Source: Takakia lepidozioides
Taxonomy: Eukaryota > Plantae > Bryophyta
DNA length: 64,000 nucleotides
Direction: 5' to 3'
Assembly (NCBI GenBank): GCA_030704615.1
Contig: CM060731.1
Coordinates: forward strand, 2,852,001-2,916,000
Position numbers and translations under genes: made by a program. The notes beneath the pieces were generated by a model. The model was not told the DNA's origin and did not search any database. It saw only the letters and a program-made list of their open reading frames with translations. Positions 25,677-63,855 of the stretch are shown here, one piece after another (the stretch's first letter is position 1; every line of letters begins with the position of its first letter).

Positions 25677-28600
25677 CTTGTGTTGCAAATCATTGACTTT
25701 AGAGTCGCTCTCCTGCTTTTGTTCCATAGCACGTACCATTGCAACCTCCATCCATCGATTCTCTGCCTCAACCTGCCAGTCCTTCAATTCAGATCCTGAC
25801 ATCTATTGACCCTCACCATGCAACATGACGGAGCCACTGCTGGCATCTTGGAGAGGCAAGCAGGGAGAAGAAAAGAAACTCTATTAACGTTGGTTAGGAA
25901 GGTGTTTTTGCGAGAGAAGGAAGAGGTGTGCTGCACACCTGTGCCAAGGCCATGACACGCTGTCGTTCAACTTCCAGTTGTTGCCGAAGAAAAGCTTGCT
26001 CCTGATTGCCCAAGCCAGCCAATCTTTCCATTTAAAATGGTCTATGCTTTGACATCTTCCCCAAATAAGTAGAGAGGCTGATCTTGTTTTGGGCCTGTGC
26101 CCTCGAGTTCGCAAGAACGCAGAGTTTAAAAGTGGATGCGGATGAAAGTGGGTGGCAACCACTAGTTCATCTATTTGAAACTGTCCATGGGCTTAGAGCT
26201 AAGCTCCACATTTTCATTTATTATCATGTCTAGACTGGGAGAGTCCTGGTCATACTCCTTGATTCCAATACATTGGAGAGCAAAAAACAGCTCATATTGA
26301 ATATCAACTGGGCTTGGAGTTGTTCCACTCTGGTCCATAACCTTAGCAGTCCACAACCATCACCCTCAATGTCTGGCTCCTCGAGAAAAATCCTTTCTGA
26401 AAGACCTTTCTCATCCATCTAGTAAGACACGGATTCATCCCTTGACACCAAAGAGGAATTTGCAAAATTGAACTGCTGTGCTAGTGGCTCACCCAGAAAC
26501 TAAGAGCCAATGAAAATTACTTTGACTTAGAAAAAGAAGGTAACAGAAGGAAACAAGGGTGGCAGAAGCTGCATACCTTGCGTACGTGATCCAGCCAAGC
26601 AACATCAACAAGCCATTTTTGTTGGCGTCGGCCAGGTGATGCTGGAGGAACCACTGAAAGGGACAAGTGGTCACAGTCACCTGGCATCAAGGTTTCATCA
26701 CGGGTTTGACTCAGCCAAGTGCTGGAGCTGCTGCCCACACTGTTGCGTACACCCATGCTGCCATGAACCCAACGTACAAGTTTTGATTAAATGCTGTCAG
26801 TTGTCAGCTCCCTTCCCTTTTTAAGGGTCATGCACCAGTTTTGGACATGCCCTTCTGTATCTAAAGGATTAGGAGTCTGCAAGAATGCTCCTATACTTCA
26901 CATCTGCTCCTGAAGCATGTTCATTGCTTTTGATGAAAAGGGCTCACTAGCCAGTGGAGCCAAAACGCAGGCACAACCATTGTCTGGGGTTGGACTAACA
27001 TGTTTGTAGCTGTAAAGGTTCTGCAAACTCTATGAGCCTACAGAATCCTTGTCAGAATTAATCTTATGAACCTAATTCCTTGGCACTTAATGCTTTCTAA
27101 TCTCTTTTAGTTCTTCAAATACCATCCAACAGATGGCCCAGCGGTTGAGGTACAAGGCCACCCTTGGAGTCCTTGGGGGAAGCTTTTGGCAACCATGTTG
27201 GGGCAGTTAAAGCAGTAAGAAGGTGTCCCCTTCTGAACAAAGGTATAGCCGTTTGGGGTGAGGAGACACCATAATTTCCATTTGCACTACAAGGAGTCCA
27301 TCTTAGTTTGTTTAAAAAAAAATTGAAACCCTCAACTCAAACTTAATCGCCACAGCCACTCATACATGCAGGGAGCAAACACCCACTGACAAAGTTCTTC
27401 AATGAACAAAGGTCTGAATTGAGTGCACCTGCTTGTGATGAGGAGACATTACGTAGACATAGACAATATAGAGGAGAGAATGAGGAAGCAGTCAAGCAGC
27501 AAAGTTGTACTAACCTGCTAGGGTTCTCAAGTTCCCAACATTGCTCCTGTTGCATTCCAGTAGCAGGGAGAGACATACTTCTGTCTACTACCCGTGACGA
27601 GGCTTTTGTTTTAACCTGCAGACTTCCTGATCCACCATCCCACAACCCCCAATCCTTTGATAAGCATGGTGAAGAAGGTCTTTTGTCCTGCCTGGCTGCT
27701 AAACTTGGCCGCCCCTTCCCTTCTTTATCTAGCTGAATCAGAGCTGCCTCAACCCCTGCAGCCTTTTTCAACTCCCGGACAGAGAGTGCTACTTCCACAA
27801 TCTTGCGCTTTCTCTCTGCTTCTTCCAGTTTCTGTTGGAGGTCAAGGATGTAACGATCCACCTCTTCCAGATGCGATGCATGCACCTTCACCATGTCTCC
27901 TTTCTTGTGGTGCTCGATGACTTTTCCCCTGTTGTTCAGCTCACTATGCTTTAGCAACCACTCTAGTTCTCGAACTGAACCTTGCAAAAGGGCAGCATCT
28001 TCCCGTTCTGCTTCCAGCTGCTGGAGCACATGGTCCTTTTCATGAATGAGTGCTTGTTCTTTGCGCTGCCACTCCTGCTGCCACTGTTGCTCTTGCATGG
28101 TTATCGTCTCTTGTTGCTCTTTGGCCCAAGCTCTCTCTCTCCTTTCCCATTCTGCTTCCTTTTCTACCCTGGCCTTCACCAATTGTGTCTCCTTGGCACC
28201 CAGCTCCTCCCGAAGGGTCTCAATGGCATTCATTGCATCAGATATCTGTTTCTCAAAGGTAGCTACCCGTCCCACAGCTGCTTGCCATTCCACTGCCCTC
28301 CAACTGCCCCCATGGCCCCGATTCACAGATTCCATCATGGACCTTTCTATACCAAGTTCCTCCAGGAGTGTCTTGTTCTCTTCCTTCAGCTTCTGACCTT
28401 CAGCATCTGCAATTCCCTTTGCTTGCCGCTCTTGATCAAGTGCCTCAGATAGAATATCTTTTTCCTGCATACAAGCAGATATTGTATTGGATAACTTAAG
28501 TTCCCTCGCTTGAGCTTCAGTCGTGCACATCATCTGCTGGTCCTCTAGTTGGCTCACCTCCTCCTTCATAGTGGCCATGTCCTCATCCTTCTGCCTAACT

Positions 28601-31305
28601 AAGGCTTTCATGTCATTCAGCTCCTGTGTCATGGCATCTATCTCATTTTGCCAGCTCTCTTCCTTCTGTCTCATCTCAGCCACCATCCTTCGCTTTCCAA
28701 CGAAATGCAACTCCATCACCTCCTCTCTCTCCTTGCGTTCTTTCTCAACCTCTCTATCGATACTTTGAACTTCATCCCTGAATTTCTGCATGGTCACTTC
28801 CATTTCATGTTCCCTTGCATGAAGCTGACCTTTCAGCATCTCCACATCAGCAGTCTTTAAAGAAAGAGCCGTCTCCATGTGCTTTCTCTCTGTTTCTAGC
28901 TGTTTTTGCTTGATCAAAAATTCAGTCCTTAACTTATCCATCTCACATCTCGTCTCTGACACTTCTACTTCGAGTTCTTTCCATTGCAGCTTGAGTTTGT
29001 CTGCGTCCCATTTTAGCCCCTTGCCTTGCAATTCATGACTCACTCTACTATCATCTGCATCCATCTCCGTTGTAAATCTTTCAATATTGGTGCAGCTCTC
29101 GCCCTCACTTTCTTCTGACATCTTCCCTGCTTGCATAATGAAACTTTCACAAGAAATACTAGTTTGTGGGCAGAGTTCCTTCCATATGTCAAGCCGTGTT
29201 ACAGGGTCAGTTGCCATTTCTTTGTTGGCATACAGAAGTTGTTGCATTTCTTCCAGCCGCCGCTTGGTTTCTGCCAAAGTAAGATTGAGCTCCTGATGCT
29301 GCTTCTGGAGAGAGACCAACTCCTGGTCTTTGGTCTCCAAAATGGATGCCCACTTGGCCACCTGTGCCTCGAGCCAGTCCTCACGTGATGAGACCATAGC
29401 CTCCCACCCGGCCTTCTCATCAGCACATTCCTTGCGGTATGCATTCAATTCCTGCTCCCAGACCTTCTGCGCTTGCAAGATTTCAGATTCTCTTTTCTTG
29501 TACTTCGTCTCCCACTGCGCCAGATCTGACTCCAAATGACTGCATCTTGTGACCAAGTTCTCCTCTCTCTCTGCCCACATTACCTCAATCTCTCTTTCCC
29601 TCTCCCTTGATCTCCTTAGAAGCAAGTTCAGCTTCTCCTCCAACTTATCCCTCTCAGCTTCCACAAGATCGCGCTGTGCTTTCCAGCGAGTAGATTGCTC
29701 AGTTTCACATGTTCGAGACCTCTTCTCACTTGTCTTCTTTGTATGGGTCCTCTGTAGCTCCTTGTCCAGATCCTTCAGTAAAGATCTTAGTCTGGTAGGG
29801 GCATCCAGTTCTCCATCCTCTTCTTTAGATAGTTTTTCCCGCAGCTTCATCAGAAAGTTCACCAACTTTTTCCACTTTTCCTCGCTCTCATTCCGCAGTT
29901 TCTTTTCCTCCCTCCACATCTCTAACATCCCATCAACTTCACACCGTGATTCTTTACGTCGCTCTTGCTCAACCACAAGGGCAGCCTCTGCCCCTCTTTG
30001 CACACCTAATATTCTGCTCACCTCCTTCTCCAGGGCAAGGGTTCGACTTTCCAGTTGACGCTCCCGCTCATGCCATCTTCGCTGCTCCTGCTGGAGGGTA
30101 CTTTCTACCTCTTCCTTGGCGTGCAGGGTAGACTCCAAAACCTGCCGGTCTCGATCAGCTCGCTCATCAGCCTCTTTCAGCATGTCCTCAAAGGCAAGTA
30201 AGAGGGCCTTATGTGGGCTAACCATGGCTTGCCGCCTTCTATCTGCAGCCACCAGCAGATTCCCATGTTTCTTCCTGAGAACATCTTCTCTCTCTATTAA
30301 CAGCTCGTCATCACCTTCGTGCAGTTCAACAAGCATTCCCTGGACTATGTCATCCATTTCATCCTGCTTCTTCTGAAGTGCATACTCCTTCTCAGCAAGG
30401 GCCACTTTGAGCTCCTCCTCCAACCGTCGCACCTTCCCCTGCAAAAGCCCAACCTCTTCTTCAAGCTGCACATCCCGTCGTTCCATTTCAAACTCACGCT
30501 CACGCCAGTCCATCTCATGGGCCTCCTCATCAGCCCGTAAACTCAACCACATCTCTTCCATAACACCTTCAAACTCCACCTCATCCTCCACCTTTTCAAC
30601 CACATGCTCCACCCTTTCCCTTCCAAGCCTTGCCTCCAATTCTCTCTCCTTAGCTGCAAGGTTTCTCAATTGTCCGAGAAGAAACCCTGAGACTTTGATC
30701 TCTCTTTTTGTTTCATCTGTTGATGGCCTGGCACTCAACTTTTTCATCTGTTCCAAGAGGTCTGTTAGCTGGCCTCCGAGCATTTGGGGTTCTTCACTTA
30801 GATTGGAGACATGAAAGCCCAACTGTGTATGCTCCCCTATATTTGGCTTACCTCCTTCCTGCTCTTTCCAACCCTCATCGAAACTAAAGCCCGCTCCATG
30901 CTCCACATCAACAAAACCCTCCATAGCTTCCATCCCTGCAGCTTTAGGAGAACAGCCCACTGGTGATTCAAAGCGTTTGTCCAAACCTCTTGTCAGTTGC
31001 CTGCTACAATCCTCATCTGAAAGGGACTGTACCTTAGTCCTTTCGCTGGAACATGGCATTATATCTCCTGAATGATCACTATCTCTAGCTGCAGCAGTTG
31101 CACTTGTCTCTCGGCCACACCTTGGTTCAGTTTCCAGGTTAGAGTCACAGCTATGTTGAAGATGAAGCAAGTTGCTATGCCGTACTTCTATTAACATAAC
31201 GCCTGCCAGCTCCTCTGAAGCTTCCTCCAAGCTTGTCAGAGGTGCCTGCCTCTCCACACACAAGCTTTTACCCTGGCTTGAATCCATGCCTGAGCACAGT
31301 TTCAC
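25677..31305 (-). CDS. Large coiled-coil protein of unknown function; both ends of the gene are uncertain
   Basis: A ~3.8-kb open exon (~27514-31305) is E/K/Q/R-rich with heptad character. Small downstream exons with splice sites follow: ~26577-26690, ~26364-26418 (MDEKGLSERIFLEEPDIE) and 25677-25795 (SELKDWQVEAENRWMEVAMVRAMEQKQ...). No family recognised. Confidence 0.75.
27130..27322 (+). mobile_element. Possible degenerate SINE in an intron
   Basis: A-box-like TGGCCCAGCGG near 27134 and an A-run at 27313-27322. No clear B box. Confidence 0.25.
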
Positions 31306-33832: not shown

Positions 33833-36800
33833 TCATTGAGGCAGATCTTGCAACTGGACTGGGGATCCTTGCCTCCGGGCGCGGTCAGCAAATGAGCTAG
33901 CTGTTGTTGCACACTCGAGGAGTCCTGCACACTCGGCAGGAGGCAACAAACATCCATCTTCTTGCTTGATGGTGTCTAAATCATTTGGGCTTTGACTTGG
34001 GGCGAACATGGCACTGTGTGGGGACCGCAAGTTCCCACGGGTCTGACATGCCAGCATGGTCTTGCAATGCTGCGCTTCATCCTCTCGAATGTTCACAAAC
34101 ACGTCGTACAGATTATCTGCCCTCCACCCACACCCCTTGCAAGCATCACAGCCTGCTCTGGAAGCTCTGATCCTAAACTGATATCTTAGAAGAATGAGAA
34201 GTCCGGGGAGGAGAAAAAGAGTCCCTTACCCACTTTTGGCCGCCTTGAGTTGGGCATGCGGTCCGTTTGAAACTCATCTGTCACATCAAAAGAAAAACTG
34301 AGCATTTGTTTGATGCACAACATCCTCACCGTATCACTGCATTAAGTGAATAAGTAACATGTCGTGGTCTCCACCAAGCAAGAGGACTCACCAAACATGT
34401 ACAAATCTCCTTCTGTGTAGTACTGCACTGCAACTTCCGGTGCAGGTAATTTCTTCAGTTCCTCTGTGGTCAAATTAGGATCTAGGCGTCAGTAACAGTA
34501 CCAACAAAGAAGAAAAAGCATCATCACCAGGGATGCATTTCCACAGAAGCCCCTGACCTTTATTTGCTAGACTGAATAATACTGGACAGTGGTGGGGTAT
34601 GTCCCCACAGGAGAGGTGGCACGAGAATTCAGCTGCACACGAACAAGAATATGAACTCTTGCAGGATGCAAATGGTCTTGTAAGTTCATACTCGAGTGCT
34701 ACGTGAGACTGCACCCTACACTTCCCACAAAGAACTGGGGGCCCAGAAAAGCCAGAACCAGGTCTTCCTGGTAAGATACTGTCCAGAGTGCGCACCACCA
34801 GAGCACTCAATGACCTTTCCAGTGAGTACAATTGGGAACCATTCCTCAAGATGCACAACACAAAATGTAGCATGGTTGAGTCTCTGGTTGCAGTTCATAT
34901 TCTTGGAACCTGGTTTGAATACTGTCAACGAAAAAGTATCCCACCTCCATGTAGCTTGATAAATTCGTCGTAAGTATGGAAGGCATGCTTCTCCACACAT
35001 TCTGAGAAGTGATCTGCAATCATATGCATCAGAAATAGCCCTGCCTCAGAGACAATCCTGCTTCATGTGTGCATATGGCTATTTATTGGCTTTAAAATAG
35101 ATTTAAATTCAATTAAATTGTAAAATGGCTTGAGGGAGGAGCGCGTCGGGGGGGAGGCAAATGATTTATTCGTCTGCTGTGTCTCCGCACATGTGTCGCA
35201 CACATGTTCAAGCACATGCGGGCAAAAGAGGGGCTTCAACCACATCCGTTCAATGGGTGCTATAGCCGTGCACGCATTGCAAGATTTCTTTTTTCGCATT
35301 GAAGAGAGAGAGAAACTTGTGGGTTGGTTCTGGTTGCCTTCTCATCAAGAAAACCTGTCTTTAGTCTTCCTTGCATATGAGGGAGGTGGGCTTCAACTTC
35401 GAAATCTGAGGTTCAGGGACAAGGCTTGGTCTTGGCTTTGGACCTCAAAATCCTGTGGGTGGCAGTTGGACTCCCTACCACCTAGAAGCAGTACTGATTC
35501 AGCCCACCCTGGTACATGAGACTCACTCCAAAATTGCCCAACGACAATCTGGTGAAGGGCATGTGGATACAAGCTGGACTGATCATCGTCAAAACACAAT
35601 GCTGATTTCAGCACTGCTGATGTAGTCATTTGCCCACAATTGCTAAAGAGAATGTACTCATGAGATGTTGTTTGCCACAACTGCTAAAGAGAAAGAGATT
35701 GTACTCATAAGACGTTGTTTGCCGTAGCCTTGTGGCCATTGACCCCGCGCCCAGTTTGAGCGGGAACAAAAGGGACAGAACCTACCTCTGTCAGGGGCTG
35801 ACGTTGGTAGTAAGACTTACCTCCATATAAAGAATTAATCCGGGTTTTCCAGATATCCTCTAGAAATCCCTTCACACAAGCATCAATCTGCTGTGTGTGA
35901 TTTGCCCAAAAACTAGGCCTCAGGAGGGCCTGGGCTTTTGGCTCAGCCTCGAGACTTTCAAAGTTGGTAAACAGGGGTACAGGCACAATTCCCTTAATAG
36001 ATTTGAAGAGAGCGTCTCTTTGGTGAGAGAACCCCGGACAGTGTATCAGAAAATGAATACTGTCTTCAGATTGCCCACACAACGGGCAATTGCACTCTCC
36101 CTTTCCTCTCTGCTTCTGTTTGCTGTTCAAAGGTAGGCTTCCTGCCCTGAGTTTAAATTTCAGTCTAGTGCCGAGAGTGGGTAGACCCTTGAGGTCATCC
36201 AAGATGTCCTCCCCCATGTCACAGACTGGAAACAAGTTCAGGGAAGTTTTCCGCCTAACTTCATTTTCATCAGACAATCTCATGGCAACAGACATGGCTG
36301 AGGACACTACAGCCTCTAAGTCAGATTTATCCAGCAGGGTCAAGACTTGCGGATCCAGGTCCAGGTCCTTGAGGATCTCTTCTACTCTCTTCTGCCAGGA
36401 CTTAGCCTGTTTGACAGGGCGGTCCTGTTTCCAAGATATAGAGTCGATTAATTTAGGATATCTGGTGTTGGGCATATGTTGCAGCTGACCCCACCATCTG
36501 ACCTTGAATTCATCTCGTCGGGAGCTTAAGGACGGAATGCCAAACTCACCCCGAACAGCCACATTGGCTGTTTTGGAGCATGCTGACATACACTCCTTAA
36601 GCACCCCCACTTGAATGGATTCTAGAGACTTAGCCTGGTTGGAGTTATCAACCCATATAGCAGATCCGTACTCCAAGGCAGGTCTAATAACGCGACAAAG
36701 CATGGTTTTCTTAACCTCAGAGTTGACCCCTCTGCAGTGGAAAAATTTAGTGAGCCCCAGAGCTTTGCCCTTGCCAGTTTGAACAACTTTCCGGATATGT

Positions 36801-39800
36801 GCATCCCAATTACAATTGGAGGAGAACTCAACGCCCAGGTAAGTGTAGGAAGGGAGGACCGGGATCTCTTGGCTACCCCACTGCCACTTAAGATCACTTC
36901 CTCCCTCTCCTCTGTCGTTGAATGCTACCACTGCACATTTGCTGACATTAGCCTCTAGCCCCCAAAGATCAAAGTATCTCTTCGCGCAATCAATCAACTC
37001 CTGGAGATTGGTTGGAGTCTCCCCTATGCCTGCGAAGTCATCCGCAAACATAAGGGCTGGTATGGTGGTATCACCCACCCTTAACCCAAATCCCTCACTT
37101 TCCACATCCTCGAGGAGTTGATTGATGAAAACATTGAAGAGCAGAGGGGAGAGAGTACATCCTTGAGCTACACCTTGGTCTATGTCAAAGAAGTTGGACT
37201 TCTGTCCGTTAACAGTGACACAGCTTTTGGTGTGAGCATACAAGTTGTGGACAACTCTCCACATCTTTCCCTTGATCCCACAAGACCAGAGGCGGAACCA
37301 TAGGCCATCCCTCCACACTGTGTCATAAGCCTTTTTGACATCCAGGAAAAAGACATAAGTGGGTATCCCTTCTTTTTTTCTTCCTTGGATAATCTGGCTT
37401 AGAGTGAAGATATGATCCACACAGCCCCTGTTTCGCCGAAAGCCAGCTTGGCCTTCGTGGAAACAACCTCTAAACTCCAGATCAACCTCGAGACGAGTAC
37501 TTATAACTCTGCAGAATGTCTTGCCAACAGCATTGAGGAGCGTGATGCCACGGTAGTTCCCCGGTTCTTCTCTGTCACCCTTCTTGTATAGATTGACAAT
37601 GACCCCCTGTCGCCAGCGAAAGGGGATCATTTCAGTCTTCCAGATAAGGTTAAAGAGGAGAACTAGGGCCTCTATCATGGAATCGCCACCGTGCTTGATA
37701 AGCTCGTTGACAATGCCATCAGGTCCACCAGCTTTATATCCATTTAAATGTTCAATTGCTTCCACAATCTCAGAAGAACTAATGGGAGCATTATAAGCCA
37801 TTGAAATATACTCCAGTTCATCAGGGCTGTTTTGAATCATAGGAACAGTTTTTCCAACTGTGTCCCTCCATTCAGCAGAAGACCCCTCACTGTTAGACCT
37901 AGAAGTTCTGCCAAGGATACTGTAGTGAGTTTCAAAGGTTTTGACAATGTCAACCGATGAAGTCACCACTGCACCTTTAGTAGTCTTCAGCGCTTGTACT
38001 TGCTGACCGTTTTTCGGTTTGTACAAACGTTGAAGGGCCAACCAGAATTTCTTGTCATTACCACCATGGTGGTTTGAGTTTATTTCACTGTATAACTTGT
38101 CCCAGTATAATTTCTTCTTAGACCTAACAAGCTGATTGATATCTTTACGGAGCTGGTAGTACCTCGCCCACAATTCTCTGTTGGTTTCCAAATTGCAGCA
38201 CTCTTTATAGAGGGCTCGTCTCTCAGCTATCTTGAGTTTAATCTCATTAGTCCACCAATTAACTGCTCTACCGCAGACAATTAGTTTCCTCCCAATGATC
38301 TTTAGCCACGGAGGAAACGAAACTCTCCCAAGAGTCCACTGCTCTTTCGACTTCATTTCTTGCGTTAACAGAGCGTGATTGAAGTTCTTGGAGCGATTGG
38401 ACAAAATGAGGGAGAGCCTCTTGCAAGGCCTGGACGTACTCAGCCTTGACCTCCTCATTGTGGAATTTTTCTATGCGCCACTTCCGAATCGAACGTTTCA
38501 CACATCTCTTGGTGGTGGGAAAACACCTTTTGATCTCAGTCCAAACCAGGAAGTGGTCAGAGGTACCAATATCAGTTCTGTCAATCAACACATTGGCACA
38601 CTGGGGGAACAAAATTTTGTCCATTATGATATAGTCCACAATGGAACGTTCCCCAGTTTGGGGTTTCTCACGAGTCCACTGCACTTGGTCACCTCTTGTC
38701 CTGTTATTCAAGGTCAAAAGCTGAAGCTCTTCTAGACAGTTAATTAACCGTCTGCCATTAGAATTCAGCTCGTCCTCACCAAAAGGTCCAATGATATCGT
38801 CCTGATGGATCCCTTTGCCCACCCGGGCATTGAAGTCCCCCAATAGTACCACCTGACCTTTGGCAAGGAACGAAGCACAGTCCAGCTTTACATCTTCGAA
38901 GGCCTTGTCTGCGTCAGCACTAAGGGTCCCCTCTGTGGGCATGTAAACACAACCAACAAAGAGGTCCTTTGTACTCATGCCGCCCTTCAAATTCAGTTTT
39001 AGCCAGATACTATGCTCGTACCTCAAACCCTTGTTGATAATTTCACAATTGTCAAACAAGAAATCACGGACAAAGAATCCAACCCCTTTTTGACCGCGTT
39101 TGGCAGAGGCTGCCTTGAGAGTACACATCTTACCTGCCCATTTATAACCAATGACATCTCCAACCAGTTTATCCGACGTTTCCCATGTTTCTTGCCCAGC
39201 ACAGATATGAATATCATTAGTCCGAAGAACTTGTCCCACTTCAAGTTGTTTCCTTTGGTTGGTCAACCCTGAGAAGTTGAAAGTGGCCAGCCGCAAGCCA
39301 GCCCTTTGCGTGTGAATTGTTTGTCGTCTAGGTAGCTTGTGATTGCTCCTGGACGGCCAACCGTTCTGCAAAGGGGGGACAGTTACCCCATGTGTAGATT
39401 TTGCTCGTCTTGTGTAAACTTTGAGAATTGGTAAACCATTCAGGGTACCAAATCTTTCAGTTACACGACACACAGGCTCCGTACACATAGGGGCAGATTG
39501 TCCGTCAGACTGCTTGGGGACAATTACCCCGTGTATAGATTTTGCTCGTCTTGTGTAGACTTTGAGGATTGGTAAACCATTTAGAGTACCAAATCCTTCA
39601 GTTACACGACGTTCAGGCTCTGCACACTTAGGGACAGATTGTCCATCTGACAGCTTGGGGACAATTACCCCATGTATAGAATTTGTTCGTCTTGTGTAAA
39701 CCTTGAGGATTGGTAAACCATTCAGAGTACCAAATCCTTCAGATTCAGGACGTTCAGGTTCCGTACACTTAGGGGCATCTTGTCCTTCTGGCTGTTTGGA

Positions 39801-42524
39801 TTCAACCTCATCCAGAGCATCAAACCGATTAGAAACTCTCAAGTTGAAGTTGTTGCCCTTGGTTGTCTTCCTAGAGCGCCCCATTGAATCACCAATGTCT
39901 AAGACCGCTCTCCAGCCAGTCAAGGGACGAACTTCTTTGAGATTGAATTGATGCGGGACTCTATTAGAAGCACTTTTGGTCATTGCAACCTTCAACGTAC
40001 CCCTGTTATCAAGTCTCGAGATGGTACCATTAGCCATGAAATCCAAGCCTAAGCTAGAGCATGTAGTTTTAAAGGACACATCGTCCATCCTGGGATTCAC
40101 CCCAAAAACTACACATGAAGCCCTAGATTTGGCATAAGTAACCAATTCCCAGGGATCACCCTGAGGAGTGTTGATGTTGATAGGAGCTAAATTTTTGATT
40201 GTTTTCGCAGGCCATAAGTTTAAGCACAGGAACCAACCCGAGCCCAAGTGCCGAGTATGCTAGACAGAGCATACGACTGCCCAATTTGGGCGGAGGGGCT
40301 GCCCCCAAGCGGTAGGAGTCCACTTGTTACCATTCAGAGATCACACTCCAGGGAGTTGCAGGGAATGGCCCGTGTAGGCATATTCTAAAGAGGGAAAGGC
40401 CCCAAGCTTTCCAACTAAATCCAATGCACTACCTTACCTGAAGCAAAGCGCTTCAGGTCGAAACAAACAAGGACACGAGGTCACAAGGCCGGCATTTAGT
40501 CACAGAGACATTAATGTACTCCCGTTTCAAGTCCACCCAATGTCAATAGGCTTCCTAGAGGACAGGGAGACTAAAGACAAAGAGAGAGGGAGAGGGAGAG
40601 AGAGAGAGAGAGAGAGAGAGCTTACATGCCATTCGGGGGCTAATTAGATACATGACCACTGTCATGAAGTAGTAACCAACAGCAATATGCTGTGCCAAAA
40701 ACCGGTCCACCCAGCGCTCATCTCCACCTAGAGCCTGCAACAACAGAGCAACTCCATATGAGCTTTGAAGTTTTGGGCTTTCCTTCAAAAAGCATTTGAC
40801 TAACAGTCCTCTCAAATGACAATGACAGGGTGAAAACTCCTGCTATTCATTCTCCCAAGTAAAACAGAAAGAGCTTAGAGCAACCCTATGGAAAACCACA
40901 TGTCCCCTTGATTTAATGTAGAAGAAAACCTCCATTGTGAGCAGGTGATGCAGTTCATTCCAGCTCTCCGCAAAATGAACCTTCAAATAGTCGGCGCGCC
41001 TCCACCACCCAAAGCTCTCATACATATGTAGTACTGACACAAATGCTACTCAGCCCTCCAACCAATGCACAGTCTCACAGTTTCAGAACCAGTGCACAGG
41101 ATTGAAAAGTTCCTAGAAGCTTCAGCAGTAAATGATGTTGTAGGAGAACAGAACAAAGTGAAAGTGATTTACAGATGACTGTCCACCTTAGACTAGCAAT
41201 TTTCCTCATCATGCAACCATAAGACTGGGATACTAACTCTTCCTGGAGCCAAGAGAGGACTTGCATCAACCAGAGTATGAACCAATTCTAAGATTGCATG
41301 GACAGTCAATACTCCTCTCAATAGATGAAAGTAGACAAAAGTCAACAGAAAGTTCAATGAGCCTGCATCTCAACAGGATAATTTATGGAACTGAACCTGC
41401 ACTGGCGAATCAAGAAGCCTACCAAAGTAGGGGACTCTGGCAATTGTTTCGAGAACATAAAATCGGGCATATAAACGCTTTGCATAGAGACCATCCAATA
41501 CCTTGATCACAGCCTCCTGCAAACAGAATTGCCCAGCCAATGAGACACTGCCCTTCCTTCTTCTCTTACCCTGGAACAATACCCCACTATGCACAGACAT
41601 ATTGCTACCAATTAGACATTTGCCACACTCTGAATGAACACACCCTAGTTAATAGGGATACCCACCAAAACGACAAAACTTTAAAGTAGGGAATAAAGGG
41701 CATACAGTGGCAAGAACGTTGAAAGCTTGCTCAGCTCTAATGACCCACTTTTCAAGGCCTTTTGGAAGGTCTGCATCAGGCTCTACTTGAATCTCCTCCA
41801 CCAAAGCCGCTTGCACCCGTCTCCAACCTCTGTAACATCCAATTTTCACCACACTGCAACTGAAGTGTGCTCTTGATCGGTTGGTTCACGAAAAATCAGT
41901 CCAATCAGCCTAGATGCTCCTAAGGTACGCTTATTTGGGCTCAAAAATTGGCTTTGCAAACAATATGATAAAAATCACACCTTTAAATACACAAGATTCA
42001 TAACACTCCAAAGCATATTGGAGGAAACTACAACATGAACTATTGCATCACAAGAATGAGGAGAGAGCCTTAGCTAATTTGCAAGCGAGATGACTAAGAA
42101 AGGGCAGCCCACGCTCTCATCCTTTGTCTCTCGAAAGAGATCAATGACTTGACTCAGCTGATCCAGCAATTGAATTCCTCCTCAGAGGTCACAACAGATA
42201 TCAATTCCCGAGACAAGTGCTGATTATCTGACACCTGTGCCTGTGTCCGTGAGTAGTAGCAAAACAATCACACAGGGAAAGAGAGAGGATGGAAGAAGGC
42301 GGAAGAAAGGGAGAAGACCTGCCAAAAGAGTGGCTTCTTAGCCGCAAGGATGCACACTCATTGTATAAGCTTTGGGGAAGCTGGTGACTCCTAATTCTCC
42401 GTAGTCGCTGATGAGCTCTAGCAATGGCAACAGATGCGCACACTCCAGTACTTTCGCCGGTGAAAGCACACTGGCTTGTGGCTGGCATAGCCCTCCATGA
42501 CCCACTTGTCAAACTGAGTGACAT
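33833..42524 (-). CDS. PTOX: Plastid terminal oxidase (IMMUTANS/AOX4), 9 exons
   Basis: Exons ~42524-42320, 41829-41706, 41516-41423, 41045-40930, 40734-40626, 35013-34945, 34463-34392, 34277-34230, 34116-33833. Di-iron motifs VLETIARVPYF, HFAESWNELHHL, HFSECVEKHA and IREDEAQH. The N-terminus is Ser/Arg-rich like a transit peptide. Confidence 0.96.
35705..38302 (-). CDS. LINE reverse transcriptase plus zinc-binding C-terminus (downstream of the frameshift)
   Basis: Motifs KAGGPDGI, PGNYRGITLL, QAGFRRNRGCVDHIF, FLDVKKAYDTV, GVAQGCTLSPLLF, FADD, YTYLGV, CPLCGQSEDSIHFLIHC. Confidence 0.93.
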   Translation of the reverse strand, partial: KIIGRKLIVCGRAVNWWTNEIKLKIAERRALYKECCNLETNRELWARYYQLRKDINQLVRSKKKLYWDKLYSEINSNHHGGNDKKFWLALQRLYKPKNGQQVQALKTTKGAVVTSSVDIVKTFETHYSILGRTSRSNSEGSSAEWRDTVGKTVPMIQNSPDELEYISMAYNAPISSSEIVEAIEHLNGYKAGGPDGIVNELIKHGGDSMIEALVLLFNLIWKTEMIPFRWRQGVIVNLYKKGDREEPGNYRGITLLNAVGKTFCRVISTRLEVDLEFRGCFHEGQAGFRRNRGCVDHIFTLSQIIQGRKKEGIPTYVFFLDVKKAYDTVWRDGLWFRLWSCGIKGKMWRVVHNLYAHTKSCVTVNGQKSNFFDIDQGVAQGCTLSPLLFNVFINQLLEDVESEGFGLRVGDTTIPALMFADDFAGIGETPTNLQELIDCAKRYFDLWGLEANVSKCAVVAFNDRGEGGSDLKWQWGSQEIPVLPSYTYLGVEFSSNCNWDAHIRKVVQTGKGKALGLTKFFHCRGVNSEVKKTMLCRVIRPALEYGSAIWVDNSNQAKSLESIQVGVLKECMSACSKTANVAVRGEFGIPSLSSRRDEFKVRWWGQLQHMPNTRYPKLIDSISWKQDRPVKQAKSWQKRVEEILKDLDLDPQVLTLLDKSDLEAVVSSAMSVAMRLSDENEVRRKTSLNLFPVCDMGEDILDDLKGLPTLGTRLKFKLRAGSLPLNSKQKQRGKGECNCPLCGQSEDSIHFLIHCPGFSHQRDALFKSIKGIVPVPLFTNFESLEAEPKAQALLRPSFWANHTQQIDACVKGFLEDIWKTRINSLYGGKSYYQRQPLTEVGSVPFVPAQTGRGVNGHKATANNVL
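38268..40247 (-). CDS. LINE N-terminal region fused in frame to AP endonuclease
   Basis: APE motifs ATFNFSG, AGQETW, GVGFFV, GCVYMP, LLGDFNARVG, SIVDYII and SDHFLVW. They are preceded by an SNRFDAL motif and three 47-aa repeats. The ORF opens on TTG; the first ATG is codon 54. Confidence 0.9.
   Translation of the reverse strand: MGSGWFLCLNLWPAKTIKNLAPININTPQGDPWELVTYAKSRASCVVFGVNPRMDDVSFKTTCSSLGLDFMANGTISRLDNRGTLKVAMTKSASNRVPHQFNLKEVRPLTGWRAVLDIGDSMGRSRKTTKGNNFNLRVSNRFDALDEVESKQPEGQDAPKCTEPERPESEGFGTLNGLPILKVYTRRTNSIHGVIVPKLSDGQSVPKCAEPERRVTEGFGTLNGLPILKVYTRRAKSIHGVIVPKQSDGQSAPMCTEPVCRVTERFGTLNGLPILKVYTRRAKSTHGVTVPPLQNGWPSRSNHKLPRRQTIHTQRAGLRLATFNFSGLTNQRKQLEVGQVLRTNDIHICAGQETWETSDKLVGDVIGYKWAGKMCTLKAASAKRGQKGVGFFVRDFLFDNCEIINKGLRYEHSIWLKLNLKGGMSTKDLFVGCVYMPTEGTLSADADKAFEDVKLDCASFLAKGQVVLLGDFNARVGKGIHQDDIIGPFGEDELNSNGRRLINCLEELQLLTLNNRTRGDQVQWTREKPQTGERSIVDYIIMDKILFPQCANVLIDRTDIGTSDHFLVWTEIKRCFPTTKRCVKRSIRKWRIEKFHNEEVKAEYVQALQEALPHFVQSLQELQSRSVNARNEVERAVDSWESFVSSVAKDHWEETNCLR
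39363..39785 (-). repeat. 3 x 141-bp (47-aa) in-frame tandem repeat in the LINE ORF
   Basis: ggtaaacc recurs at 39430, 39571 and 39712 (period 141). The peptide FGTLNGLPILKVYTRR occurs three times. Confidence 0.95.
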
Positions 42525-61553: not shown

Positions 61554-63855
61554 TCACTCTTCACTACCCTCGACTGGAAGCCCATCCTTAAACCAAGACC
61601 GAAGACCACCTTCCAAGTGCACAATGTTTTTGTAGCCGTCCAAGACCAGTATGTAGGCAGCTATCAAAGATCTGCCAACACCATGAATAATGTGAGCGTC
61701 ACAACCTCTCTTTCTCTCTCTAGTCAAGCCTACAATGAGTGAACATATGTTTGAGTCTCGGTGACATTGCTGCCAGCCTTGCAATCCCGGGTCTGGAGCC
61801 CCATATTGCTTGCGTATCCTCGTGATGGTAGACTCCATGCTTAGTTTGGACAAAGCAGAAGAGAGGAGAGAGGGAGCTGAGTAATCTTGGTGTGACCTAG
61901 GCCAGTGGAAGAAATATAAGGAAACACTACAATTCGACAAGCTGAAGCCTAGCGCAATTACCAATTGTGAGCTTTGTCAGTCTTCCATGAACAAGGTGTA
62001 CTATAGCCTACCCAACAGCCCTTTCCATGTTGGACACAAGGCTGAACACTAAGTTTACAGTAGACTTCACTAACTATGAACAGTACATTGAACAAAACTA
62101 GGTAAATTGAAGCTATGTACCCGAGCTAAAGACACTGTGTTTGTGGATAGGACCAGCTACCCCACAATTAAAAGCATGGTATGAAACATAAAAAGGTTGC
62201 AAGGGGACAAAAATTGTTTAACCACATGAAAGCAGGAAAAGAGTCAAGACCTAACCTGGACTGCTGCCCGTCGGCCAGGTTGGGGGTGGGCTTCATGGTG
62301 CCACCAGAGGAGCAAGCAACTATGGCTTTCGAACTCTTATCCAGCTTGGATCCCACATCTGTCAATCCACACACAGCAAAGGAAGGAAAAAGAGTGTGAG
62401 GAGGGGGTACCTTGACTCCTTGCCTTCTGAGGAGGCCTGGTTGGGTCTAGTGGAGCCCCCCATGGTGCATACTACAACAATTGGCGACTCCTTACCAAGC
62501 CTCCCCCCAACTTCTGTGCAAGGTCCAGGTTTTGCAAATTAACTCAGGGACTCCATTCTCCCCTAAAACTCTAAGCAGCATAGTCTTTCAAACAAAGCAT
62601 ACATCAGGAGTACACAGGATAGGAAATGAGAATGACTGGGTGAAAAGGTCATAGCAACCACCCTGCGGAGCTTCGGAACTCCTCCATGCTAAGAGGCAGG
62701 ACAAAGCAAGAGGCACAACTTCTCATCCTGCTGTTTGGATGCAAGGAGGGAGTGCACAGAGAGCAAGTAAATGTGGCCCTCTCCAAGCCCATAACTTTCC
62801 TGAACTTGGCAGTCCTACAAGGTGTGTCATAAGCTCCATGAGCACATTTATTAAAGCGTAGGTTCAGAACAAAGTGGCCCATCTTGGCCAAGTGCTGGGT
62901 AAGTCATTGCTAGACATCATTGTCATGATGTCTAGCAAGACATCATGACAAGAGCCCTAAACAGCTTGGTGCACCCATGCAATACAGATTGAATCCCAGC
63001 TTTGTTTCACAATTCCGGACACCACTATCCTGCTACTGCGTTTGAAAAGAAAAAGTAACTTCCTGTGTGAATGCTTGGTTCCTATCTAGTTTCCTCAAGG
63101 TAAGGATATAGAGGCTGGAACACACAATCCTAACTGCTGCCCAACTGAATTCCAGGGTAGTTGAAAGATATGAGATTTCCTGAATGCATGCTGATAGCCA
63201 ACAGAACTTGGAATTTGTAAGGCAGCCAGACATCAAACCAAGCAGTTTATATCACTTCTCCCTGTAACTCTACCATTGCCTGCTGAGAAATTCACACATG
63301 ACTTACAGTCAATTCTCAGCAGTCACACTTAGGAAGCCGTACATCTTAGTGACTGACATAAGATTGATCACAATATACTAAAACACAGTTCAAGAAACCT
63401 GCTAAGATCATCCAATCAACAGGTATTCATTATTTACAGACCTTTCAAAAACTCTGGATTCTCCTCCGTTCCTTGAAAGATCCCAAAGAAAGCAAAAGCT
63501 ACACGTCGAGCTACATCCCATGGTGTCCACTCCTTGATAAGCCGGTACAGCTGCACATTAATGGCCCCAGTTGGATGGATCTACAACCACACAATCCCCT
63601 CACTGTCATAAACGCTTCACAGCACAAAGTCTGTAGTATTAATCAGTCCTACAGATCTGCATGATCAAGGTTGCTCTTCAGTTTAGCTTTCCTGCAAACC
63701 CAAGTCACTCCATCAGTCCTCACTCTTAATGACAACTATGTAATAAGGGGTGCGATAGATACCTCAGCAAACTCACCCTCAGGACGCACATCAAGGATGG
63801 TGTAACCTTGTTCTTGCTGAAGCCGCAAGGCCTCCTTTACATTTACAGACCTCAC
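61554..63855 (-). CDS. STR14: Chloroplast rhodanese-like domain protein, STR14-like; 5' end beyond the window
   Basis: Exons 63855-63763 (VRSVNVKEALRLQQEQGYTILDVRPEGEF), 63580-63442 (HPTGAINVQLYRLIKEWTPWDVARR..FFGIFQGTEENPEFL), 62358-62256 (IVACSSGGTMKP...GQQSR) and ~61670-61554 (SLIAAY.L...GYKNIVHLEGGL..W). Confidence 0.92.
62411..62513 (-). CDS. Duplicated alternative exon of the rhodanese gene (candidate mutually exclusive exon)
   Basis: 103 nt flanked by cacag| and |gtaccc. It is open in the same phase as exon 62256-62358 and encodes EVGGRLGKESPIVVVCTMGGSTRPNQASSEGKESR. Confidence 0.8.

Follow-up and report, generated by a model that had tools for sequence, protein, structure and literature searches.

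The gene for a predicted chloroplast sulfurtransferase, the orthologue of Arabidopsis STR14, carries in Takakia lepidozioides (Bryophyta) and in three liverworts two adjacent versions of the exon that encodes the active site, most likely a homologous mutually exclusive pair at least as old as the moss-liverwort split, although only one version, exon B, has been observed in productive transcripts. The alternative copy, exon A, is old and under purifying selection, but no transcript including A alone was found in contigs, annotations or the protein database, so that a full-length A enzyme is inferred.

The exon pair and its gene

We analyzed a window of 64,000 nucleotides (GCA_030704615.1, contig CM060731.1, positions 2,852,001 to 2,916,000; coordinates below are those of the window). 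The relevant features, all on the minus strand, are:

63763..63855 (-), constitutive coding exon, N-terminal part of the rhodanese domain, with a weak Pfam Rhodanese match; the first exon, expected to encode the transit peptide, lies beyond the window end
63442..63580 (-), constitutive exon before the cassette, ending in phase 1, an STR14-specific segment with 75-93% identity to land-plant orthologues
62411..62513 (-), exon A, 103 nt, unannotated alternative copy encoding a helix, a strand, the catalytic Cys (C-x-M-G-G) and a loop insertion ending GKESR
62359..62410 (-), 52-nt intron between A and B
62256..62358 (-), exon B, 103 nt, the standard STR14 exon (C-S-S-G-G ... GQQSR), the type found in the full-length land-plant homologues retrieved
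62231..62248 (-), intronic element just after the B donor, complementary to the last 18 nt and donor of exon A, a possible species-specific silencer of A
61554..61671 (-), last coding exon, phase 2 entry, stop at 61556-61554, matching the C-terminal part of Pfam Rhodanese

The first-pass annotation, made from the sequence alone, had described two adjacent 103-nt exons with AG/GT ends and the same phase (1 in, 2 out), both open, free of indels and separated by 52 nt, and this observation is confirmed, with coordinates and counts that are correct. The exons align without gaps, and 13 of 35 residues are identical when the junction residues are counted (12 of 33 internal). The CTCAC motif, which had been placed about 10 nt from the donor, starts at +11 and has its A at +14. 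Chance similarity was rejected: among 123 open AG-103nt-GT segments in the window, A scores 70 against B and the next best scores 5, and among 33,127 open 33-codon stretches, only B itself and A reach 70.

Searched exon by exon, the flanking exons give rhodanese matches, and their relatives are named rhodanese-like domain-containing protein 14, chloroplastic, the orthologue of At4g27700; the closest database proteins are from Sphagnum. These searches, together with natural homologues, identify a single rhodanese domain with a catalytic Cys loop. A model of the natural Marchantia B form is a confident predicted rhodanese fold (pLDDT 89). Alignment to AtSTR16 (1TQ1) shows that the exon encodes the helix and strand before the catalytic Cys, the C-x-x-G-G loop, and a family-specific 14-residue insertion before the R-S that closes the loop. 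In B-type proteins this insertion is well conserved, whereas A differs at most of its positions.

Elsewhere in the window, two long minus-strand ORFs (35705-40247) resemble the endonuclease and reverse transcriptase of a LINE retrotransposon, and a 1320-aa uninterrupted coiled-coil-rich ORF is present on the minus strand at 27343-31305.

Transcript evidence

The first-pass annotation had named splice junctions and orthologous copies as the points on which its proposal could be checked. Two public runs from two studies, both only presumed to be RNA, contain the locus. In both, contigs join 63763 to 63580, 63442 to 62358 and 62256 to 61671, so that B is spliced on both sides and is the main form; nothing lies on A, and no joint including both exons was present. 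Given that contigs drop rare variants, and that an equal-length alternative exon is the kind of variant removed by assembly, this does not show that A is unused. Both runs read C for T on the plus strand at 63512, a synonymous Val change in the exon before the cassette that is probably an allele difference from the assembled plant. Low-depth contigs cover part of the intron upstream of A (62776-63318); a 46-nt piece of it (62981-63026) is also part of another, deeper contig with unrelated flanks, and both runs show 11 other letters in its place, possibly a repeat or an allele difference.

The Marchantia annotation does contain A, but never alone. BFI30440.1 and BFI10218.1 (215 aa) are A spliced directly to B, and PTQ38548.1 and BBN05328.1 (232 aa) are A plus the retained intron; both forms stop early in B. 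If these models rest on reads, the acceptor of A is used in vivo and the 51-nt intron can be removed, which argues against strict steric exclusion in Marchantia. A search of 5.8 billion proteins with the Marchantia exon A region returned only the truncated Marchantia isoform, no A-type proteins were found from transcriptomes, and a metagenome scan for A returned nothing.

Conservation and loss of exon A

The same A-then-B pair is present in Marchantia polymorpha (Mp3g12160), M. paleacea and Riccia fluitans, with both exons 103 nt long and introns of 51, 52 and 65 nt. The order, the lengths, the AG acceptor and the GTAC donor after A are shared by four species of two bryophyte divisions. Thirteen of 33 residues of A are invariant, including the Cys, M-G-G and G-K-E-S. 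Between Marchantia and Riccia, exon A has dN 0.21 and dS 1.07 (dN/dS about 0.2, Fisher p=0.0007; changes by codon position 10/3/15), similar in ratio to B (0.13 and 0.54), indicating protein-level selection on both copies. Between the two Marchantia species, A and B show 0 changes in 206 nt against 13 in 330 in constitutive exons, and the small intron shows 1 in 51 against 112 in 678 in flanking introns (both p=0.002), so that the cassette is constrained at the nucleotide level too.

Between the Takakia window and the liverworts, the selection signal is weaker (dN/dS about 0.37, p=0.035; codon-position test not significant). Together with the lack of contigs on A and with repeated loss in other mosses, this leaves a remote possibility that A is a slowly decaying relic in this species, kept functional only in Marchantiales or in none. 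However, frame, both splice sites, Cys and the GKES end are intact here, whereas Sphagnum shows what an unselected copy looks like: a recognizable remnant at the same place, matching the Takakia A at the DNA level (p=0.0005), with the Cys and both splice sites gone.

No intact A was found in Calypogeia, Selaginella, Diphasiastrum, Adiantum or the angiosperm-type loci, and a metagenome scan for B yielded Sphagnum, angiosperm-type and algal-type loci, none with an intact A. Having been lost from or being absent in Sphagnum, Ceratodon, Calypogeia and all vascular plants checked, A is dispensable in many lineages. The Ceratodon (locus L004) and Chara (L054) orthologues are intronless, which suggests independent replacement by retrocopies, and hence uninformative on the pair; Ceratodon kept the B type. 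In Selaginella, the start of the intron before exon B (L002:3650-3682) weakly resembles exon B at the DNA level (p 0.008, uncorrected), possibly a trace of a lost duplicate. The Adiantum orthologue spans 68 kb (L007:2001-69901) through very long upstream introns, while the intron before B is only about 88 nt. The acceptor before B has a similar purine-rich end (GGATTG..CAG) in this species, Marchantia and Calypogeia (L005:3431-3481, L001:6255-6276, window 62359-62375), although Calypogeia has no A.

Closterium has a single exon at the same intron phases, ending GKESR like A, and Netrium ends the same way; in Chlorokybus (protein P0061), the active-site segment (C-G-M-G-G-S) resembles A more than B. 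A 34-column tree separates the A copies from the B copies (88/97 and 85/96, below the starred level), with Chlorokybus on a long branch next to A. With so few columns, the AU test does not reject a clade of the Takakia A and B (p=0.058), but independent, convergent duplications in this species and in liverworts appear very unlikely given this grouping, the shared C-x-M-G-G and GKES, the same order, the GTAC donor, the branch motif position, the intron likeness and the Sphagnum remnant. The pair is at least as old as the moss-liverwort split, over 400 million years ago; an origin before the bryophyte-vascular split is suggested by the tree but not established (AU p=0.094 for a bryophyte-only A+B clade).

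How exclusion might work

All four species have a YTNAY branch motif with its predicted branch A at +14 (Takakia) or +15 (the three liverworts) from the donor of A. In the Takakia intron, the only A residues at branch-point distance from the acceptor are +14 and +16, with no other A between +17 and +44, whereas Marchantia has a second motif at +34, 18 nt from the acceptor, which may explain the leak. Inclusion of both exons shifts the frame and gives a stop 81 nt before the last junction in all three lineages, which fits the usual NMD distance rule. Given the annotated A+B splice, steric exclusion looks leaky in Marchantia, and frameshift/NMD is probably the backstop. In human, 75% of annotated mutually exclusive exons (MXEs) were of the frameshifting type with joining reads, and most clusters have one ubiquitous exon along with regulated ones (PMC5740500). 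Some co-inclusion therefore does not refute mutual exclusion of the productive forms.

A conserved RNA structure that selects the exon was not supported. The 18-nt inverted repeat that could pair the 3' end and donor of A (62411-62428) with the intron just after the B donor (62231-62248; -27.3 kcal/mol, p 0.003 uncorrected) was found only in this species and is not conserved in liverworts. An intron-to-B hairpin appears in liverworts with weak z-scores (-1.0 to -2.2) but not here (+1.4), and alifold gives no consensus. Use of A as an alternative last exon by read-through is not favored either, because the tails after its donor are unrelated between species and Riccia has no early stop, while the donor is conserved.

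Interpretation

Most likely, a tandem duplication of the active-site exon of STR14, at or before the moss-liverwort split, gave a homologous mutually exclusive pair, and we hold this reading with fair confidence. In this view, B is the default and A is a rarely used, probably condition- or stage-specific alternative that would give a full-length rhodanese with the same catalytic Cys but a different active-site loop and insertion. Choice of exactly one exon would be enforced, first, by the inferred branch point 14-15 nt from the donor of A, tight in this species and Riccia but leaky in Marchantia, and second, by frame, because both exons or neither shift it and co-inclusion creates a likely NMD target. 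The anatomy, conservation, purifying selection, use of B, use of the acceptor of A in Marchantia gene models, and the frameshift and stop on co-inclusion are demonstrated by the analysis, whereas NMD, the A-only mRNA, its protein, the sulfurtransferase activity of either isoform, plastid location (by analogy with AtStr14) and a changed specificity are inferred.

The main argument is that codon-level selection on A needs a folded product. The truncated A-containing proteins lack model residues 128-163 (the last helix, strand and helix of the domain) and so are unlikely to explain this selection. The principal alternative is that A is now a conserved unproductive-splicing (poison) element, use of whose acceptor yields only transcripts with a premature stop, tuning the STR14 level through NMD without a full-length A enzyme. 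This matches the Marchantia annotations, the nucleotide-level constraint across A, the intron and B, and the common position of the stop. We nevertheless consider it unlikely, because a poison exon need not keep the catalytic Cys, the exact 103-nt length or the deficit of non-synonymous change, and because the lack of a branch A more than 16 nt from the donor makes A+B splicing hard in this species.

The first-pass annotation had inferred an old, selected splice switch producing two enzymes with different active sites, with mutual exclusion through steric hindrance and frameshift/NMD. This interpretation is only partly supported: the age, selection, coverage of the catalytic Cys and following loop, and frameshift hold, but a transcript with A alone was not found and the Marchantia models argue against strict steric exclusion there. 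A change in substrate or partner is plausible, since variable MXE residues cluster at functional sites (PMC7954323), but remains hypothetical.

More tentatively, early land plants might have switched the active site of a plastid sulfurtransferase by mutually exclusive splicing, with A keeping the algal-type loop end (GKESR, as in Closterium and Netrium) and B carrying the land-plant type. The pair could then be one of a larger overlooked set of ancient homologous MXEs kept in mosses and liverworts and lost in vascular plants, which would overturn the angiosperm-based view that this splicing mode is negligible in plants. This is possible, but we consider it less likely than not.

Comparison with known systems

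Homologous MXEs are regarded as very rare in plants, and our literature searches, which reached few subscription papers, found no report of the second exon of this gene or of duplicated exons shared by mosses and liverworts. The pair sits on the catalytic loop of an enzyme, is missing as a productive form from the gene models checked, and is present in Marchantia polymorpha, where RT-PCR, long reads, NMD inhibition, exon-specific knock-outs and enzyme assays are routine. It also offers a natural loop-swap pair for learning what the unusual active-site insertion of STR14 does.

Homologous MXEs arising by tandem exon duplication are well known in animals (Hatje 2017, PMC5740500; Lam 2021, PMC7954323) and share with the present pair equal length, the same phase, homologous sequence, a donor-to-branch distance under 50 nt (predicted here), a frameshift on co-inclusion, variable residues at a functional site and one default exon; the present pair is found in bryophytes, and its A-only junction is so far without read support. 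In Arabidopsis, only 14 internal exons, of very unequal length, were annotated as mutually exclusive, and 99 predicted candidates were preliminary (PMC3923563). Arabidopsis FLM/MAF1 is a plant gene with two alternative internal exons, but these are of unequal length (19 and 15 aa), and remnants of the cryptic one were found only in the close paralogues MAF2 and MAF3 (PMC3266260), whereas the STR14 pair is homologous and shared by mosses and liverworts.

Arabidopsis STR14 (At4g27700), a plastid single-domain sulfurtransferase (group VI), has orthologous exons at 70-93% identity. AtStr14 is only lightly characterized: it is plastidic, interacts with Trx f1 and has H2S-releasing activity with 3-mercaptopyruvate (PMC4618214). 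The angiosperm-type, fern and lycophyte loci checked have only the B exon, many with an intron of only about 90 nt before it, and the A version is undescribed. In AtSTR16 (At5g66040, PDB 1TQ1) and GlpE-type single-domain rhodaneses, the C-x-x-G-G then R-S active-site loop aligns with that of STR14, but STR14 has a 14-residue insertion between GG and RS, and it is this insertion that the swapped exons encode.
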